Source: Guillardia theta CCMP2712 (lineage: Eukaryota > Protista > Cryptophyta). From it: a stretch of 64,000 nt of DNA. The notes under the pieces were generated by a model. The model did no database searches. It was not told where the DNA came from and saw only the letters and a list, made by a program, of their open reading frames with translations. The stretch lies in contig NW_005434653.1 of NCBI RefSeq assembly GCF_000315625.1, positions 630,638 to 694,637 on the forward strand, in the 5' to 3' direction. Each line of letters opens with the position of its first letter. Position 1 is the stretch's first letter. Both the position numbers and the translations under genes were made by a program. Positions 14,071 to 57,827 of the stretch are shown here, one piece after another.

Positions 14071-14316
14071 GGATTTTATTCCTCCTGCATGCTCCTGCTG
14101 CTTGTTGCTTGACCCTTCGGCTGCTTGTCTGCGCGGCTTCGCGCTTGGGCTGGCGATGCCGGGTCTGCTGACGGTTGCCAGCAGTGCTGGTTCTTTTCGG
14201 GCTTGTGTTTTGTGTGTGTTTGTGCAGCTTCTCGCTGTGAACTGTGTGCCAGGAGGTTTAGCTTGTTCCTGCTTTGTTTTGCTTGAGGCACTTTTTACCT
14301 TCTGTCAGTAAATCCT
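14071..14316 (+). repeat. Solo copy of the element's ~245 bp 3' UTR unit
   Basis: Near-identical to 17925-18177, 19964-20214, 22086-22344 and (inverted) 23117-23366. Confidence 0.9.
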
Positions 14317-15344
14317 ATTAGATCCCCTCAAGGCCTTCCCGCATTGCTATGCTCAGATGCTCAACTGCTTCTTCATGGCATGCCGATCTGCCAGTGTCCG
14401 ACGCAATGGATGTCAGCGCCAGCTCGATCCTTCCGTTGCTGCGCATCATCTCCAGACCTGCAAACGGCGATCCTCCAAGCTTCCTACAGCTGCCTCCGGG
14501 GTAGGATTTACTTGCCGCTTTGTGGCGGCAGCGGACGTCTCGACTGACAGTGGTCAGTCGGCTGCTTCCGGGTATCGCGTCTAAGGGATTTTATTCCTCC
14601 TGCATGGTTTTCCTGCTTTCTGTGTTCCATCTCTACCGTTTTTCGACCTCCTCGAGGTCGAACTTGCTCTTTCACATGTGAGCGTTTTCTTGTCATCTCC
14701 TCACACCATTCGTCGAGTTTCTTCAGGTTCTCCCTGTTTTCATTCAAAAATTTGAATTTTCCTGGCGGTCATCTGCATGCTACTTGGTATCTTGGGCTCT
14801 GTCGAGACCTCATGGCACTAGGTTTCACTTGTGCTCTGTTCTGATCCTCTCCCTTGTACGGTGGGACTGGCATGCGACGCCCTTCCGCTCCACCTCCAGT
14901 GGCTCAACCTTGCTTATCGCAACATTTGGCTCCACTACCTGTCACTGGCATGAGGCGTCGAGATCTACCTTGGGCTTTACTACTAGTGACGGGCGATACC
15001 ATGTCGCTCGGCTGACCCTTCTTTTTCTCCAATGGGTTTGTTCAAGCGGAGGCTCTCCCCCAAGTGCCGAACTCCTGCTCGTCGGTCCAGCTTGCGCATC
15101 TACCGGCGTTCCTTCTTTCGACGCTGGGTAGCTCAGGCCCAGAGGCGCAGACTCGGCAGCACTCCTTTCTCTCCTGCTCTGCGTCCTGTATCCGGAGGGA
15201 ATCTGCTGGGGTCCCCTTCCCTCCTCCAGTCGCCTCCCGTGGCTCCTCTCTCCCCCTCCCCCACCGCCATTGTCGACCTCAGCGGTCGCAACCTGACTGA
15301 GGCCTCTCCGCGGGTCGAGCCCGCCTCACTGACAAAGGTCTTTT

Positions 15345-16084
15345 GTGGATGCTGACAATGCCCAGACCGGGGAGGGGGAGGGGGAGGAGGACAAGCGCCC
15401 AGCGGCCCCTGGTGCTGCCTCCCCCTCCTCTCCGGACTCCTCATCATCCAGCTCGGATGATGCCTACCGCCGACTGTTTCAGCTTGATTCCTCAGCTGAT
15501 GTTTCTCAGTCTCCAGCTGCAGGCGCTGACTCTCCGCCGTCCCTCTTCGGGGGCCCTGCGAAGGCATCCGATGCATCAGCCTGTGCTGCGAATGTCCTGC
15601 CTGACGAGGATGATCAACCTGACCTTGCTGATGCCGACCCTGATTCTGCTACGGATGTGCCCCCGGTTCCACCTATGGCCACCTCAGATTGGCCGGAGGG
15701 CTTGCAGTGGTTGATGTCCAACCTCCGAGTCTTCCTCTATATTCATGAGCGCTTTCGTCCTCATGTCACTGCGTCTCACCTCTTTGGTGAGACTGCAGAG
15801 CTTTGGCTGACTTGTCTTGTGTCTTTGCTGCAATTCATCGATCGATATGATCCTTCCTCGTCCAGCTATCAGACCCTTGTTCTGCTCTTTGAGCACCTTC
15901 CCGCCTTACTGCTTCCCGTACCCAAGGCTGCCAATGGTCCTACCAAGGACGCGCTTATCAAGCGCCAGTGCCGACGTTTCTTGAAGGGTGAATGGAAAGC
16001 TCTTTTCAAGCGCTATCTGCCTGCTGCAGAAACCCATGGGAAGAAGCAAGCAAAGGGGGCGCGGCAGCCTTCACCGCCCCAAGG

Positions 16085-16131
<47 letters not shown>

Positions 16132-16357
16132 TTCGGCGGTCACCTCGGCACCTGCAGCCCTCGTCCCTCCCACAGCAGCAGCTGCAGGAGTCCGAGCAGC
16201 TGCAACCGCCCCGCGGCGGCAACGGCAGAAACAGCAACGGCGGCGGCAGCCACATCCGCAGCCGCCGCAGCCGCAGCCGCAGCCGCAGCCGCAGCCGCAA
16301 CACCACCGCCACCAGCAGCAACCGCAGCAGCAGCAGCCGCAGCCGCAGCACCCGCGT

Positions 16358-16389
<32 letters not shown>

Positions 16390-17730
16390 GCAGCAACGCC
16401 AGCGTCAGCAGCAGCGTCCGCGTCAGCAGCAGCAGCAGCAGCAACACCAGCAACCACCACAGCAGCGACCACAACCGCGCAGGCCGAGGGAGCAGCGGCA
16501 GTCCGGCCAATCGTCTCAGGAGTCTGAGCCTGCTCCTCCGCCGCGACCTACGCTGTCCCTCACCTCTGAGAGCGAGCGCCAAAGACAGTTGGCGATTCAT
16601 CAGTTCACTGCGGGTGACCTTCATCGGGCGGTACGGACACTACTGAGCTCCGGCATCTACAAGGCTGAATCTTTCGCTGATCTTCTTGCTGAAGCACAAG
16701 AGAAGTTCCCTGATGGTGCGTCGCCTGCCTTTGGAAGTGCTTCCGCGGATCATCTCACCCAGCAAGCGCTTGCAGTACTGCAGGTGGATTTGACTGACAT
16801 CCTCGACACCACTAGCCTGATCCAGGCGATCAAGCGCTACAGCTCCTTTGCGGGGACCGATGACCAAGGGTGGAGGATTCGGCAACACCTGTCACCCCTT
16901 TCTAGTCATCCTGCAGCTTTGAAGCTCTACTGCAAACATATCCTCCAAGGGGTCCTTCTTGGCCGGATGCCGGATCTTCTTATTCCTGCCCTGTCAGCCA
17001 TTCGTCGAGGAGGCAGATTTATTCCCCTCTCCAAGGGAGCTGATAAACCTGGTCTCCGGCCAATTGTCATCGGTTCTGCACACCGTCGACTCGCGACGAA
17101 GCTTGCTTTGGCAGGGATTCGCTCTTTTCTTGACCAGCACTTCCTCTCGTCTCACCCTCGAGCGATTCAGTTCGGACTCGATCGAGACGGCTGTCTGAAG
17201 TTCTCGCAAACCGCGTCAGCGCTCCTGCCCCTTCACGCTCGCGGTGATGATGAGGATGTTGCCAAAAAAGTTTACGAAAGTTTACATCCCCTCCTGGCAT
17301 CAACGTCTCAAGATTCAACTTCTTCACTTCGAGGTCGTCACTGGCGGGATTACACTTGGCGGCCTGCCTATCGGCACGGATGGATTTCATGCTAGTCAGC
17401 TCCGAGCGAAGGTTTCTACCCTCAACGAAGAGCTCTCGAAGCTCGGGCTCGTCCAGCATGGCTTCATGTTCAAGACGCTGGTGAGGGCGAGCCATCTCCA
17501 GAAGCTGCGCTTCTTCCTCCAGGGGTCTTCTCCGTTTCTCCCGCGGGTCCAATCACAGATTCGTCGCTTTGACCTCTCTGTCCACCTGGCGCTTGAGAAA
17601 TACCACCGCTGGCCTTCCTCGCAGTACCTCGCCGCGCATCCCGACCTGCTAGAGTTTGCGAGGTTCAAGCGGGAGCTTCCGGGCGGCATAGTCGGGGAGG
17701 GGACGAGTTCAACGCGGCCCTCTGAGGGTC
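15345..17730 (+). pseudogene. Disrupted retroelement ORF (N-terminus, polyQ/CAG tract with frameshift, RT with internal deletion)
   Basis: Frame changes between ORFs 15345, 15992 and 17244; no QG/YxDD region between the QFG motif and the late RT motifs. Confidence 0.75.
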
Positions 17731-18182
17731 TAATCGCCGCCGAGCGGTACCGTGTTCCTGTGTCCAGCCTCCCTCCGTCCGCTGCCCCAGGCGGACCCCC
17801 GGGCAACGCCGGCTCCTTGTCGGCGGCTGCCCTTTCTCCGTCCGCGGCCGCCCGCTTTGTGGCGGCAGCGCGGACGTCTCGACTGACAGTGGTCAGTCGG
17901 CTGCCTCCGGGTATCGCGTCTAAGGGATTTTATTCCTCCTGCATGCTCCTGCTGCTTGTTGCTTGATTGCTTGACCCTTAGGCTGCTTGTCTGCGCGGCT
18001 TCGCGCTTGGGCTGGCGGTGCCGCGCTGACGGTTGCCAGCAGTGCTGGTTCTTTTCGGGCTTGTGTTTTGTGTGTGATTGTGCAGCTTCTCGCTGTGCGC
18101 TGTGTGCCTGGAGGTTTAGCTTGTTCCTGCTTTGTTTTGCTTGAGGCACTTTTTACCTTCTGCCCGGCAGTAAATCCATTGT

Positions 18183-20214
18183 TCTGACCAGCCGATGTCA
18201 CGGACGCTGCTCTCTCCTCATAGCCTGGACGTTCACTGCTCGAGATCTCTCCGTGCCCAGAAGCATCCTCTGGCGACCTTCTTCGTTGAGGCGCACGACT
18301 TCGTTCATAATGCTGGAGCGATCCTCTACCGTCGTGTGAGGGCTCCTGCACCGGCTGCAGATGGCGCGGCGATCCCACCTGCCCCGGCTGCTGTGCCTGA
18401 TGATGCAGGACGCCCCCCGGCATCTGTGGTACACATCCCTGGTTTGCGCGCTCTCGTCGACTCGTCTCATGAGCACTTTATTGCTCCGCCTGCGCAGCGA
18501 AATGTGACCCCTCTTGTCATGCGCGTCTTCCCTCGCCATGTGCATGCTCGCGCTGCGCTGACCGATCAGCAGCGTGATATCCTCACCTTGCACAGCCGCA
18601 GGACACACTCGCTCAAGTCGCAGGATAGGGTCTTGACAGTGCAGTCTACCATCTTCGCTCATTTTCCTGAGCGTGACCTGAGCCACTCTCCGATGCGAGT
18701 CTCGAGCTACTACCCCCTCAAGGCCTTCCCGCACCGCTATGCTCAGATGCTCGACTGCTATCTCCATGGCATGCCGATCTGCCAGTGTCCGACGGAATGT
18801 GATGGATGTCAGCGCGAGCTCGATCCCTCTGTTGCTGCACATCATCTCCAGACCTGCAAACGCCGATCCTCCAAGCTTCCCACGGCGCATGACAACCTTA
18901 CTCGTACGATTCGGTCGATGCTGAACGAAGCTGGTCTTCAGAGCGTCATCGATACAGTGGGGGATCCTCGTTCTCGACGGCAGGTACCCTCCCATCCTCA
19001 TGGCCGCAAGATGAAGGGCGATATCCACATCCCTGGAATCCGCGATCGAGGGTCCGAGCAGTACGAGGGCTTGATGGCGGACGTGACGTTGGTCCACCCT
19101 TACTGCCGACCTGACCAAGTGGGGGGAGGTCAACCTCGACGCCCTCCATGTTGCAGCGTCTGAGAAGATTCGCAAACATCGCGCTGCATATGCCATGACT
19201 ACTCCTGCATCCTGACACCCTCCGCTTCATCTGGTATCTCGCGGACATCATTGCTCAGCGCTCGATGCCTCTTGAGGATGCGGCGTTTGGTCGGCACTTC
19301 GTGCCTGATGACGGACCTGCTGCTGAGGTCCTGGCTCGCAAACGCGCCGCCACCTATCATGCCAGCGCCTCACTATGCAGCTGACGCTGGAGGCGCTCTT
19401 GTCTGGTGCGAGGCGCATGACGCCCTTGCGGGCGCAAGCACTTCTCGAGCCAGAGGACAGCTCCTCCTCGGACTTTGTCGAGTCGCCTGAGGAGGAGTCT
19501 TCGCCGGAGGTCTCCGACTCCGATGGGGGAAACACGTCGAGTGGCGCCGACGATCGGCGCGGAGCTGGCGAGGCGTCTCCGTCCCTCACTGTGACGTCGG
19601 GTGCCTCCGGAGAGCTCGACACCACTGGGGTGCTTGCTGCTGGTCCGAGCTCGCCTGCTTCCTCCCCGGCATCGGTCGGGTCACGCCGGTCCTTGGGCAT
19701 TGCTGCGGCGTCGCCGCCGTCACGGGCGGCTACCACTGACTCGGCTACCGCTGACTCGGAGGCTAGCGAGGAGGACTACCTCGAGCGGTACCGTGTTCCT
19801 GTGTCCAGCCTCCCTCCGTCCGCTGCCCCAGGCGGACCCCCGGGCAACGCCGGCTCCTTGTCGGCGGCTGCCCTTGCTCCGTCCGCGGCCGCCCGCTTTG
19901 TGGCGGCAGCGGACGTCTCGACTGACAGTGGTCAGTCGGCTGCCTCCGGGTATCGCGTCTAAGGGATTTTATTCCTCCTGCATGCTCCTGCTGCTTCAAG
20001 TTGCTTGATTGCTTGACCCTTAGGCTGCTTGTCTGCGCGGCTTCGCGCTTGGGCTGGCGGTGCCGCGTCTGGGTGCCAGCAGTGCTGGTTCTTTTCGGGC
20101 TTGTGTTTTGTGTGTGATTGTGCAGCTTCTCGCTGCGCGCTGTGTGCCAGGAGGTTTAGCTTGTTCCTGCTTTGTTTTGCTTGAGGCACTTTTTACCTTC
20201 TGCCAGTAAATCCT
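18183..20214 (+). mobile_element. 5'-truncated copy (zinc knuckle, RLE, S-rich tail, 3' UTR) with small deletions
   Basis: Near-identical to 20641-21940 and 22349-23114; ends CCAGTAAATCCT. Confidence 0.85.
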
Positions 20215-20284
20215 GTAGGCTATGCCTGACACTCTGAGTTTTACTCGCATACCGTACCCTGCTACCCTGCCAGTAAATCCTCTA

Positions 20285-22344
20285 CTACCCTCAACGAAGA
20301 GCTCTCGAAGCTCGGGCTCGTCCAGCATGGCTTCATGTTCAAGACGCTGGTGAGGGCGAGCCATCTCCAGAAGCTGCGCTTCTTCCTCCAGGGGTCTTCT
20401 CCGTTTCTCCCGCGGGTCCAATCACAGATTCGTCGCTTTGACCTCTCTGTCCACCTGGCGCTTGAGAAATACCACCGCTGGCCTTCCTCGCAGTACCTCG
20501 CCGCGCATCCCGACCTGCTAGAGTTTGCGAGGTTCAAGCGGGAGCTTCCGCATAGTCGGGGTGGGGACGAGTTCACGCCCTCTGAGGGTCTACACCCCGC
20601 TGTTTACTATACGGCTATCGCTCGCTTCCTCGCTTGGTACTCTGACCAGCCCATGTCCCGGACCCTGCCCTCTCCTCATAGCCTGGACGTTCACTGCTCG
20701 AGATCTCTCCGTGCCCAGAAGCATCCTCTGGCGACCTTCTTCGTTGAGGCGCACGACTTCGTTCATAATGCTGGAGCGATCCTCTACCGTCGTGTGAGGG
20801 CTCCTGCACCGGCTGCAGATGGCGCGGCGATCCCACCTGCCCCGGCTGCTGTACCTGATGACGCAGGCCGCCCCCCGGCATCTGTGGTACACATCCCTGG
20901 TTTGCGCGCTCTCGTCGACTCGTCTCATGAGCACTTTATTGCTCCGCCTGCGCAGCGAAATGTGACCCCTCTTGTCATGCGCGTCTTCCCTCGCCATGTG
21001 CATGCTCGCGCTGCGCTGACCGATCAGCAGCGTGATATCCTCACCTTGCACAGCCGCAGGACACACTCGCTCAAGTCGCAGGATAGGGTCTTGACAGTGC
21101 AGTCTACCATCTTCGCTCATTTTCCTGAGCGTGACCTGAGCCACTCTCCGATGCGAGTCTCGAGCTACTACCCCCTCAAGGCCTTCCCGCACCGCTATGC
21201 TCAGATGCTCGACTGCTATCTCCATGGCATGCCGATCTGCCAGTGTCCGACGGAATGTGATGGATGTCAGCGCGAGCTCGACCCCTCCGTTGCTGCACAT
21301 CATCTCCAGACCTGCAAACGCCGATCCTCCAAGCTTCCCACGGCGCATGACAACCTTACTCGTACGATTCGGTCGATGCTGAACGAAGCTGGTCTTCAGA
21401 GCGTCATCGATACAGTGGGGGATCCTCGTTCTCGACGGCAGGTACCCTCCCATCCTCATGGCCGCGTTGAAGATGAAGGGCGATATCCACATTCCTGGAA
21501 TCCGCGATCGAGGGTCCGAGCAGTACGAGGCCGGGCGGCTTGATGGCGGACGTGACGTTGGTCCACCCTTACATTGGTAGCTCGGCCGACCTGACCAAGT
21601 GGGGGGAGGTCAACCTCGACGCCCTCCATGTTGCAGCGTCTGAGAAGATTCGCAAACATCGCGCTGCATATGCTATGACTACTCCTCCTCGAGCGTTCAT
21701 CCCTCTTGCCATCTCGACGGACGGTACCCTGCATCCTGACACCCTCCGCTTCATCTGGTATCTCGCGGACATCATTGCTCAGCGCTCGATGCCTCTTGAG
21801 GATGCGGCGTTTGGTCGGCACTTCGTGCCTGATGACGGACCTGCTGCTGAGGTCTTGGCTCGCAAACGCGCCGCCACCTATCAGCCCCTCACCATGCAGC
21901 TGACGCTGGAAGCGCTCTTGTCTGGTGCGAGGGGCATGACNNNNNNNNNNNNNNNNNNNNNNNNNNNNNNNNNNNNNNNNNNNNNNNNNNNNNNNNNNNN
22001 NNNNNNNNNNNNNNNNNNNNNNNNNNNNNNNNNNNNNNNNTCGACTGACAGTGGTCAGTCGGCTGCCTACGGGTATCGCGTCTAAGGGATTTATTCCTCC
22101 TGCATGCTCCTGCTGCTTGTTGCTTGATTGCTTGACCCTTAGGCTGCTTGTCGGTACGGTCTGCGCGGCTTCGCGCTTGGGCTGGCGGTGCCGCGCTGAC
22201 GGTTGCCAGCAGTGCTGGTTCTTTTCGGGCTTGTGTTTTGTGTGTGATTGTGCAGCTTCTCGCTGTGGACTGTGTGCCTGCCGGTTCAGCTTGTTCCTGC
22301 TTTGTTTTGCTTGAGGCACTTTTTACCTTCTGCCAGTAAATCCT
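20285..22344 (+). mobile_element. 5'-truncated copy (thumb region to RLE; interrupted by N gap; 3' UTR)
   Basis: Begins with sequence matching ~17416 onward; ORF 20335-21543; ends CCAGTAAATCCT. Confidence 0.85.
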
Positions 22345-22348
22345 ATAG

Positions 22349-23405
22349 CCCTGCATCCTGACACCCTCCGCTTCATCTGGTATCTCGCGGACATCATTGC
22401 TCAGCGCTCGATGCCTCTTGAGGATGCGGCGTTTGGTCGGCACTTCGTGCCTGATGACGGCCCTGCTGCTGAGGTCCTGGCTCGCAAACGCGCCGCCACC
22501 TATCAGCGCCTCACTATCAGTGCAGCTGACGCTGGAGGCGCTCTTGTCTGGTGCGAGGCGCATGACGCCCTTGCGGGCGCAAGCACTTCTCGAGCCAGAG
22601 GACAGCTCCTCCTCGGACTTTGTCGAGTCGCCCAAGGGGGAGTCTTCGCCGGAGGTCTCCGACTCCGATGGGGGAAACACGTCGAGTGGCGCCGACGATC
22701 GGCGCGGAGCTGGCGAGGCGTCTCCGTCCCTCACTGTGACGTCGGGTGCCTCCGGAGAGCTCGACACCACTGGGGTGCTTGCTGCTGGTCCGAGCTCGCC
22801 TGCTTCCTCCCCGGCATCGGTCGGGTCACGCCGGTCCTTGGGCATTGCCGCGGCGTCGCCGCCGTCACGGGCGGCTACCGCTGACTCGGCTACCGCTGAC
22901 TCGGAGGCTAGCGAGGAGGACTACCTCGAGCGGTACCGTGTTCCAGTGTCCAGCCTCCCTCCGTCCGCTGCCCCAGGCGGACCCCCGGGCCACGCCGGCT
23001 CCTTGTCGGCGGCTGCCCTTTCTTCGTCCGCGGCCGCCCGCTTTGTGGCGGCAGCGGACGTCTCGACTGACAGTCACTGGGTCAGTCGGCTGCCTCCGGG
23101 TATCGCGTCTAAGGTCATAGGATTACTGCAGAAGGTAAAAAGTGCCTCAAGCAAAACAAAGCAGGAACAAGCTGAACCGGCAGGCACACAGTCCACAGCG
23201 AGAAGCTGCACAATCACACACAAAACACAAGCCCGAAAAGAACCAGCACTGCTGGCACCCAGACGCGGCATCGCCAGCCCAAGCGCGAAGCCGCGCAGAC
23301 AAGCAGCCTAAGGGTCAAGCAATCAAGCAACAAGCAGCAGGAGCATGCAGGAGGAAGAAAATCCCTTACACGCGATACCCGGAGGCAGCCGACTGACCAC
23401 TGTCA
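22349..23405. mobile_element. Short 5'-truncated copy (22349-23114, +) joined tail-to-tail to an inverted 3' end (23117-23405, -)
   Basis: 23117-23405 is the reverse complement of the 3' UTR and ORF end. Confidence 0.85.
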
Positions 23406-23684
23406 NNNNNNNNNNNNNNNNNNNNNNNNNNNNNNNNNNNNNNNNNNNNNNNNNNNNNNNNNNNNNNNNNNNNNNNNNNNNNNNNNNNNNNNNNNNNNNN
23501 NNNNNTCATAAAACTATCATCGACTAAATTCTACAGAGGAAGAGCGGGAGGAAGAGAGGGAGAGAGGGAGAGGAAGAGCGGGAGGAAGAGAGGGAGGGAG
23601 GGAGGGAGGGAGAGTACCAGAGTTCAGTCTGACTGGCTTTCAGGTCGGGCGCCTGTCAGAACCGGCAGGTCGTCACGATCTGGC

Positions 23685-55753: not shown

Positions 55754-56472
55754 AGAAGTCAGCAGGGGCGCCTTGGCATGCGCATGCCTTTTCACCTGGA
55801 TCGCGCTCCTTCCGATCATCGTTATGAGGTTGGAGGAGTGAAGTGGGAGAACTGGTTGCAAGCAGAGAGGGGCTAGGAGTGCTCGGAGCCTTCACAGGAG
55901 TCTGAGCGGAGGGGGAGGAAGGGAGGAGGACGGGATTTTGTCCGTGGGAGCTGGTGCTGGTGCTGTGGGGCAGGGAGCAAGTGGCGGGGGAAGGCGTGGA
56001 AGAGGAGGGCAGCTCAACGGCAAAAAGGCGTGTAAGGGTAGGGAGGGTGGGGGTAGGGGTGCCTAAATGGAAGGGTCAATTTTAATGGAAATGAAGGGGT
56101 GGTGACGGGTAACGTAGGGGTCTCTGAGGTATAGAAAAGTACCGGTCATTCATAATGGCCCAATGGGTTAGGGGTGGGTGGATGTTCTCACCCCGGGGAG
56201 GGGTTCTTTCAAGGGGTAATCTGTGGTGCTGAGGGGGTCCAGTCGGATCCTCACACTGATCACCGGTGTTATTCACTGGAAATCTACTCCAGATGTGGGG
56301 GTAGGGGGTGGTCCCCCGCTATCTAAGACATGCCGTTTCTAATTTGCAGGTCAGTCGACCCCCCACCCCTTTNNNNNNNNNNNNNNNNNNNNNNNNNNNN
56401 NNNNNNNNNNNNNNNNNNNNNNNNNNNNNNNNNNNNNNNNNNNNNNNNNNNNNNNNNNNNNNNNNNNNNNNN

Positions 56473-57198: not shown

Positions 57199-57827
57199 NN
57201 NNNNNNNNNNNNNNNNNNNNNNNNNNNNNNNNNNNNNNNNNNNNNNNNNNNNNNNNNNNNNNNNNNNNNNNNNNNNNNNNNNNNNNNNNNNNNNNNNNAT
57301 CATCCGATGTTGTAATCGTCCGACGACAAGTTATCAAAATCAGTGTCCAGAAGGTATCTACCGCAGAGGGCTATCTAGACACGCCAAATGATAAGCTCCG
57401 CCGCATGTGTCGTAATTCTCACATAAGAGGAGCCGATCTCCTGTGTCATCGTGTCATCCGCATCGCAGGCAAAGTGATTTCTATGCGAGATGTGATTGAC
57501 CTTGCTTCCTTTCATCGGAGTCAAAGAGGATATCAATGGATAGCACTGAATTCGAATTTGTAGAGGGAAGATCACAGATCTATTGTTCGTGTATAACGTT
57601 TCTAGCGTTCGAACATGGATGGTTTCGAAATACATCCGAATCCACGCTGGGTGGGAGAGGGAGAGAGGGAGAGAGAGACGGAGAGAGAGAGGGAGCGGGA
57701 GTGAGGGAGAGGGAGAGGGAGGGAGGATGGAGGGAGAGAAAGGTAAATGAGAATGATCCCAACCCCCTCTCTCTGTTCAACGTGTACTAACACTGTTGTT
57801 TTCAGAATCTTCATAGTATTGTACTCG

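Follow-up and report, generated by a model that had tools for sequence, protein, structure and literature searches.

Long interspersed nuclear elements (LINEs) with a restriction-like endonuclease (RLE) are known to insert site-specifically, into rRNA, spliced-leader or snRNA genes. The R2 clade proper has one or more N-terminal zinc fingers, a Myb domain and one insertion site in 28S rDNA, and the members of the CRE/SLACS clade (CRE1, CRE2, SLACS and CZAR) insert into spliced-leader genes and carry a poly(A) tail. Head-to-tail arrays with no host DNA between copies are formed by other elements without long terminal repeats (non-LTR elements), such as HeT-A/TART of Drosophila and GilT and Genie of Giardia, and Zepp is a member of the L1 group with an apurinic-type endonuclease and poly(A) tails. 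The closest published parallel to the locus described here is the Zepp LINE of Coccomyxa, whose nested clusters occur strictly once per chromosome and are probably centromeric; ZeppL in Chlamydomonas is a further parallel. Most RLE elements are described as integrating into repeated DNA (PMC4640811), and islands enriched in a single non-LTR element, G2/Jockey-3, are described at each centromere of Drosophila (PMC6516634). Here we analyze a stretch of 64,000 nucleotides of the cryptophyte Guillardia theta CCMP2712 (C21:630638-694637, hereafter the window; assembly of 87.1 Mb in 669 contigs) that contains, at positions 14071-23405, an island of copies of a non-LTR retrotransposon of the RLE LINE group, which is about 5.7 kb when complete (its 5' boundary is undefined).

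New copies sit inside older copies of the same family

The island has the look of a head-to-tail chain of 5'-truncated copies, and an earlier note on this DNA had proposed an element that chains onto itself. We consider it probable that the apparent chain arose largely through nested insertion, with an R2-like element entering its own older copies. In the window, this is resolved most cleanly at a truncated copy ending at 18177 (F6 in the list below), whose left flank ends at R3607 and whose right flank resumes at R3656, both in one older copy, with 49 bp of target lost; the 18177/18183 junction therefore marks an insert within an older copy. The R coordinates (R1-R5727) used throughout are those of two natural copies kept separate, one for the 5' part (L045:1111-1927) and one for the rest (L051:2679-7588), chosen because the longest copy of the window lacks the reverse transcriptase (RT) core; this reference is not a consensus.

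The same arrangement is found across the genome, where we sampled 157 distinct 3' junctions at 57 loci on dozens of contigs. Element DNA lies within 200 nt after every one of the 157 junctions, mostly within 4-8 nt, in accord with an element confined to its own copies. The downstream flank has the same orientation as the insert in 93 cases and the opposite orientation in 64, and these flanks map at many internal positions of the element, from R745 to R5727. The idea that insertion occurs at the element's own ends, also raised in the earlier note, fails as the main mechanism on these internal targets and on the nested insert at 18177/18183. For the 113 testable inserts (those described by a single alignment fragment), the 5' and 3' neighbors are contiguous, that is, separated by -60 to +160 on the reference, in 52; when the 3' neighbors were permuted in 2000 trials, this number averaged 5.5 and never exceeded 15. 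New copies sit almost exclusively inside older same-family copies, in either orientation. A tabulation of the terminus-flanking bases and junctions had been proposed in the note as a check on the chain, and over the 157 junctions it favors nested insertion instead.

Gaps between the two flanks cluster at -1 to -9, which indicates a tiny duplication or junction microhomology, and 11 inserts have lost 13-89 bp of target. Terminal fragments (n = 166) have a median length of 149 nt and range from below 60 nt, as in 52 of the 166, to more than 1500 nt. Insertion positions track the abundance of each element part, except at a hot spot, R4676-4739, where 15 insertions are observed and 1.9 expected (P about 3e-9); around the nick, C or T is only weakly preferred (positions -2 to +2). 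At four loci (L012, L016, L055 and L057), paired termini face each other over a target remnant of 11-25 nt, each with a TATA or TATG tail, which suggests closely spaced nicks on both strands. Several inserts start at the first bases of the 3' untranslated region (3' UTR), just past the stop codon (R5479-5491; position 14071 in the window, and loci L009, L035, L053 and L057). Such starts could mean that 5' truncation is favored at this point, or that the template was a short sub-genomic one of about 247 nt.

New copies are usually severely 5'-truncated. The best-supported mechanism is target-primed reverse transcription into older copies, with a minor head-to-tail component; the endonuclease would nick the DNA and the RT would copy the RNA from its 3' end. 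Repeated rounds would then build a nested pile which, when read along one strand, would appear as a head-to-tail chain.

In the window, an exact-match scan places the end of the decamer CAGTAAATCC on the + strand at 14315, 18177, 20213, 20280 and 22343. The full termini close stretches of 245-440 nt that are 81-97% alike between copies, so these are homologous copies and chance matches are excluded; the terminus at 20280 is a mini-terminus of 14 nt (20267-20280), and a sixth terminus lies in inverted orientation (23120-23405). No A-run follows any terminus in the window. The common terminus and the missing poly(A) tail reported in the earlier note are both confirmed. Its further statement that no host DNA separates the copies also holds, the only non-element DNA between pieces being 57 nt at 20214-20270. 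The pieces that follow the four full + strand termini begin on the reference at R4181 (position 14324), R3656 (18183), R3300 (20285) and R4723 (22349). The features of the island are as follows.

14071..14315, +: F1, copy consisting of the 3' UTR only (R5481-5727) at the left island edge, followed by the tail TATT; non-element DNA lies to its left
14324..14484, +: F2, internal fragment (R4181-4347) of the zinc-knuckle coding region, without a terminus of its own
14501..14513, -: inverted mini-terminus of 13 nt with one mismatch, between micro-fragments
14515..14606, +: F3, end of the open reading frame (ORF) and start of the 3' UTR (R5410-5501), adjoining the 5' region of the long copy
14607..17265, +: F4, long copy Y, with 5' region, ORF1-like part (15345-16080), CAG/poly-Q tract and N-terminal RT part to R2655
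17304..17732, +: F5, copy Y (R3188-3607) after an internal deletion of 533 bp
17741..18177, +: F6, 5'-truncated copy (R5299-5727) nested in copy Y, tail ATTG
18183..19206, +: F7, copy Y again (R3656-4682), with linker, zinc-knuckle and RLE coding region
19204..20213, +: F8, C-terminal extension and 3' UTR (R4724-5727), terminus at 20213
20214..20284, +: F9, tail TGTA, 53 assembly-unique nt, mini-terminus 20267-20280 and tail TCTA; no reference match
20285..21940, +: F10, copy (R3300-4936) with RT thumb, linker, zinc knuckle and RLE, running into an assembly gap
21941..22040, no strand: assembly gap
22041..22343, +: F11, R5435-5727, terminus at 22343, then tail TATA
22349..23114, +: F12, remnant of an older copy (R4723-5481), starting inside the R4676-4739 insertion hot spot
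23120..23405, -: F13, inverted copy (R5727-5440) entering a second gap (23406-23505)

The long copy Y comprises F4, F5 and F7 (and F8 or F12), spans 14607 to at least 20213 or 23114, and besides the nested insert 17741-18177 has others, both at the R4682/R4723 hot spot and at R5481. No LTR-like repeats were found in it. It is one of the rare copies with a complete 5' region (in 14607-17732), which is present at only five loci in the assembly, and the 533-bp deletion of copy Y removes RT motifs A-C; every element copy in the window is dead. The F7/F8 junction shows a loss of 41-42 bp at a CCT microhomology. F12 is flanked on both sides by inserts whose 3' ends point at it, the terminus of F13 facing it across GTCATA, which on F13's own strand is the tail TATG. 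Element DNA is confined to 14071-23405, none being found in the rest of the window or in 10 kb on each side, and the island is interstitial. Small GC-rich insertions distinguish individual copies, namely CCGG inside the terminus at 18164-18167 and 8 nt in the 3' UTR at about 22153 (22153-22160). Directly to the right of the island, beyond the gap, lies a purine-rich simple repeat of GGGAGG/GAAGAG (23530-23620), and two other assembly gaps of the window fall outside the island (56373-56472 and 57199-57298).

A different origin of the chain would be serial end-to-end template jumping, in which the RT stops internally, adds bases and restarts at the 3' end of another RNA, so that the chain is written in one or a few events. 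Template jumping is known for the R2 RT, which Bibillo and Eickbush reportedly found, in 2002 and 2004, to jump end to end between templates. Within 80 nt of 12 of the 157 junctions there is a second terminus of the same orientation (the mini-terminus at 20280 is one of these), 16 inserts have the 3' end of another copy as their 5' neighbor, same-orientation junctions are in excess, and the series 20213, 20280, 20285 in the window fits a jump chain. However, such a chain is expected to have one orientation and no flank continuity; the 64 downstream flanks of opposite orientation and the 52 inserts with contiguous target flanks do not agree with this, and template jumping is therefore not the general mechanism. 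In addition, the pieces at 14324-14484 and 14515-14606 have no terminus and are not producible by a jump chain, and repeated insertion at a preserved nick site gives the same picture, a nick hot spot being present. We thus regard serial jumping as an unlikely source of the chain. For the head-to-tail subset (e.g. 20213 to 20280 to 20285), template jumping and re-use of one nick site are both possible, and it is for this minor component that self-chaining may apply. Re-use would be permitted if the downstream half of the site survives each insertion, and the mini-termini could come from abortive reverse transcription restarted on another RNA end or from repeated use of the same nick site.

Several observations weigh against nested insertion as the account of the whole island. 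A cleanly resolved nested insert is seen at only one of the four junctions first noted (18177/18183): the junction at 14315/14324 marks the edge of the island and has host DNA to one side, the joint at 20213-20285 is genuinely head to tail, and the partner flank of 22343/22349 would fall past an assembly gap. Contiguous flanks are missing from 61 of the 113 testable inserts, for which multi-level nesting, deletions and short loci account in some cases, not demonstrably in all. Junctions with short spacers have a same-strand bias (77 versus 44). Finally, retrotransposition itself, the RNA 3' end and chromatin targeting are what we infer, with few RNA reads to draw on (39), and the sequence YADN at RT motif C, described below, leaves the predicted RT activity unproven.

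The bases between a terminus and the next piece had been called untemplated-looking, a description that has to be revised for most of them. At 86 of the 157 junctions the first bases past the terminus are TAT, at 20 ATT and at 11 ACT; T occupies position 3 in 82% of cases, and A or G occupies position 4 in 83%. These bases do not match the target, and the tail class tracks 3' UTR variants (Fisher p = 9e-6, the best of 17 columns). Since tail class follows subfamily in this way, the semi-conserved tail is probably largely templated. On the simplest reading, the RNA would end a few nucleotides beyond AAATCC, so that the parent locus would supply the tail and in some cases additional bases. The 57 nt at 20214-20270 occur nowhere else in the assembly, and their first 13 nt (20214-20226) recur past an element terminus in the island of contig C34 (L047:344-356); this stretch may have been carried over by 3' transduction from a parent locus that the assembly lacks.

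The hot spot in the window offers a further case that fits either template jumping or re-use of one nick site: the long copy is interrupted at R4682, R4723 is the start of F12, and between them are two terminus-bearing units, F8 with F9 and F10 with F11. F8 and F12, which begin at R4724 and R4723, are mutually the closest copies (96.6% alike), with three substitutions in common that are absent from nine other copies and with 9-14 private changes each. A repair-mediated duplication is therefore also possible; that the two are duplicates of one another (a long target duplication) is at most suggested. Processes at the DNA level (unequal recombination, segmental duplication, or break repair that copies neighbors) might on a larger scale have made much of the order, with retrotransposition supplying only the raw copies. 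Besides F8 and F12, they would fit island L043, in which two junctions at R4723-4725 have spacers identical but for one extra base, and the micro-fragments and filler at 14485-14514 and 17266-17303. We find this explanation quite improbable: the variants in common are few compared with the private changes of each piece, the canonical terminus and tail at most junctions mark reverse transcription rather than recombination, and flank continuity is as insertion predicts.

A last possibility is that the copies were collapsed or mis-joined in the 2012 Sanger/454 scaffold. The island does contain two gaps, and a single small hairpin of the 3' region coincides with an edge of each, at 22041 and 23405 (R5435-5440 at the edges themselves), suggesting that sequencing or assembly breaks there. 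The hairpin has an 8-bp stem and a 4-nt loop and spans R5435-5452 (22041-22060 and 23386-23405 in the window). Between the gaps, the segment 22041-23405 has inverted 3' UTR copies at its two ends, 99% complementary to each other, so its orientation rests on scaffolding alone and a flip is equally consistent with the left flank. Across the gap at 21941-22040 the flanks, R4936 on the left and R5435 on the right, are collinear on the same strand; one copy could span it if about 500 bp rather than 100 are missing, with continuity and reading frame unproven. Independent data consist of short contigs, the only such data over the island, and a thin RNA sample (the 39 reads) that makes the evidence of transcription weak. 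Nevertheless, a 2021 run yielded a 95-nt contig that bridges 18136-18230 with zero mismatches, and in contigs from the same run the terminus is joined to many internal positions via ATTA, ACTA and (T)ATAT-type spacers. Terminus-to-internal joints in independent contigs mean that this class of junction is real and not an artefact of the present assembly. The same kinds of junction occur at 157 distinct places on dozens of contigs, and those within a contig are independent of scaffolding. An assembly artefact is accordingly a highly improbable source of the pattern.

Architecture and family of the element

In order, the element consists of an ORF1-like N-terminal part, a poly-Q tract, an R2-related RT, a CCHC zinc knuckle, an RLE of the PD-(D/E)XK type and a Ser/Ala-rich C-terminal extension. 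The 3' UTR of 250 nt ends in CCAGTAAATCC and is followed by the 4-nt tail, without poly(A). A protein word search identified a relative, P0004, on a Logan contig, in which a single ORF of 1511 aa is 70% identical. With the Pfam RVT_1 model, P0004 reaches 30.8 bits and just passes the cut-off of 29.6, and the G. theta copy reaches 26 bits. The copy on contig C77 shows RT motifs A, B and C, which align among the clade members.

Assignment to the RLE group, which had been made in the earlier note, is upheld by two lines of evidence. First, an RT profile of nine sequences (the element family and metagenomic relatives) matches R2 proteins in the PDB with E values from 7e-19 to 1e-8 and LINE-1 ORF2p only with 5e-4. 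Second, 12 sequences keep C31, C38, H51, C55, H66 (H(D)), D110, D130 and K162 downstream of the RT, and a structure search with an AlphaFold model of the C-terminal domain (pLDDT 78) returned R2 proteins as its first six PDB matches (E 9e-5 to 3e-3), followed by other PD-(D/E)XK nucleases. As modeled, the C-terminal domain is a zinc knuckle with a restriction-like endonuclease of R2-like fold. The profile was needed to reach R2, as phmmer with the G. theta ORF gave no match in the PDB.

RT motif C reads YADN instead of YADD in eight of the nine clade members (identities 21-70%), including P0004, and ADD is seen only in P0094. The YADN copy of G. theta is that of C77 (L051:3516-6434). The ORF1-like and RT parts are linked by a CAG/CCG-rich poly-Q tract (16080-16500 in the window; L045:2446-3277), and in both of the G. 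theta copies examined the frame downstream of this tract is shifted by -1; P0004 has no such tract and one continuous ORF.

With Pfam, neither the ORF1-like part of the window nor the 420 N-terminal residues of P0004 gave any domain (no zinc finger, Myb domain or apurinic/apyrimidinic-type endonuclease). The ORF pieces of the window gave no Pfam match either; the RT core is deleted in its long copy. Look-alikes in the ESM Atlas were generic RVT_1 clusters only, and none of the cluster names of distant relatives pointed to the CRE, NeSL, R4, HERO or R2 clades. No Rfam family came near threshold, and neither a hammerhead nor an HDV ribozyme appeared at E values up to 1. A Penelope-like or DIRS-like element, considered for the tandem and inverted arrangement, was rejected, as the endonuclease is of the R2 type and Pfam gave no match to a GIY-YIG endonuclease or a tyrosine recombinase. 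In the literature searched, we found no description of this element or of Guillardia LINEs in general. At least one second family is present in G. theta, with 36% identity over the pre-RT and RT region; its open frames measure 1100-1400 aa, and it maps outside these islands (contigs C42, C22, C210, C4, C31, C19 and C445).

A single stretch on each contig with matches

In three genome searches, the same-family matches of every contig formed one stretch of at most about 17 kb; on C21, the only island is 14071-23405. One of these searches covered about 48 contigs and scored every one of its 123 candidates, and in the junction-spanning search the scored copies were all of the 3' UTR; the units throughout are scaffolds (669), not chromosomes. 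Sequence-specific self-recognition was considered as the cause of this confinement and set aside, as the target motif is merely the weak C/T bias. Targeting of a chromatin domain appears more likely than sequence recognition.

As each contig with matches has one island, this chromatin domain may be the centromere. Each single island would then be a candidate centromere of its G. theta chromosome, and the element would be tethered by way of centromeric chromatin and not by a DNA sequence, a reading that we put forward as tentative and rather doubtful. The literature searched contained no description of cryptophyte or Guillardia centromeres. If the reading is true, cryptophyte centromeres are built and renewed by R2-like self-nesting, convergent with the Zepp/ZeppL centromeres of green algae. 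Islands found once on each scaffold with matches, of a family found only inside itself, are in any case concrete candidate loci for CENH3 mapping.

Comparison with known systems

The G. theta element resembles the RLE LINEs (R2, R4, NeSL/Utopia, CRE/SLACS and HERO) in an RT that is closest to solved R2 proteins, in a CCHC knuckle and PD-(D/E)XK endonuclease downstream of the RT, in variable 5' truncation and in insertion into repeated DNA; like R2, it has no poly(A). It differs from them in lacking a Pfam N-terminal zinc finger or Myb domain, in targeting its own copies at many positions and not one site in rRNA, spliced-leader or snRNA genes, in its YADN motif C, in a long C-terminal extension past the endonuclease, and in an identity to named families too low for phmmer. 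Placement in the R2 clade proper was considered and rejected on two defining features, there being no zinc-finger or Myb match in Pfam and the targets being its own copies at many positions. In its visible features it also differs from CRE/SLACS, since it has no poly(A) tail and its target is no spliced-leader gene. An RLE element whose sole 'site' is its own pile, without a clear motif or a recognized DNA-binding domain, raises the question of how it is targeted. As enzymological oddities, both the conserved YADN motif and the probably templated tail of 4 nt can be put to the test.

Compared with HeT-A/TART, GilT and Genie, the G. theta copies likewise stand head to tail without intervening host DNA. 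Those arrays are, however, uniformly oriented and terminal or in a fixed repeat, whereas the G. theta island is interstitial, has both orientations and shows insert within insert. What had looked like such a chain is largely nested insertion on the reading we favor, and this correction is part of the result. The G. theta islands are also, like those of G2/Jockey-3, enriched in one non-LTR element. G2/Jockey-3 belongs to the Jockey clade, has another type of endonuclease and is embedded in satellites, at centromeres established by CENP-A mapping, whereas the G. theta islands are candidates only.

The likeness is greatest to Zepp and ZeppL of Coccomyxa, Chlorella and Chlamydomonas, as the G. theta copies insert into copies of their own family and, on the contigs with matches, lie within one stretch. 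In contrast to Zepp, the G. theta element is of the RLE type, has no poly(A) and resides in a cryptophyte, an unrelated lineage. What is new here is the combination of an RLE LINE with Zepp-like self-nesting.

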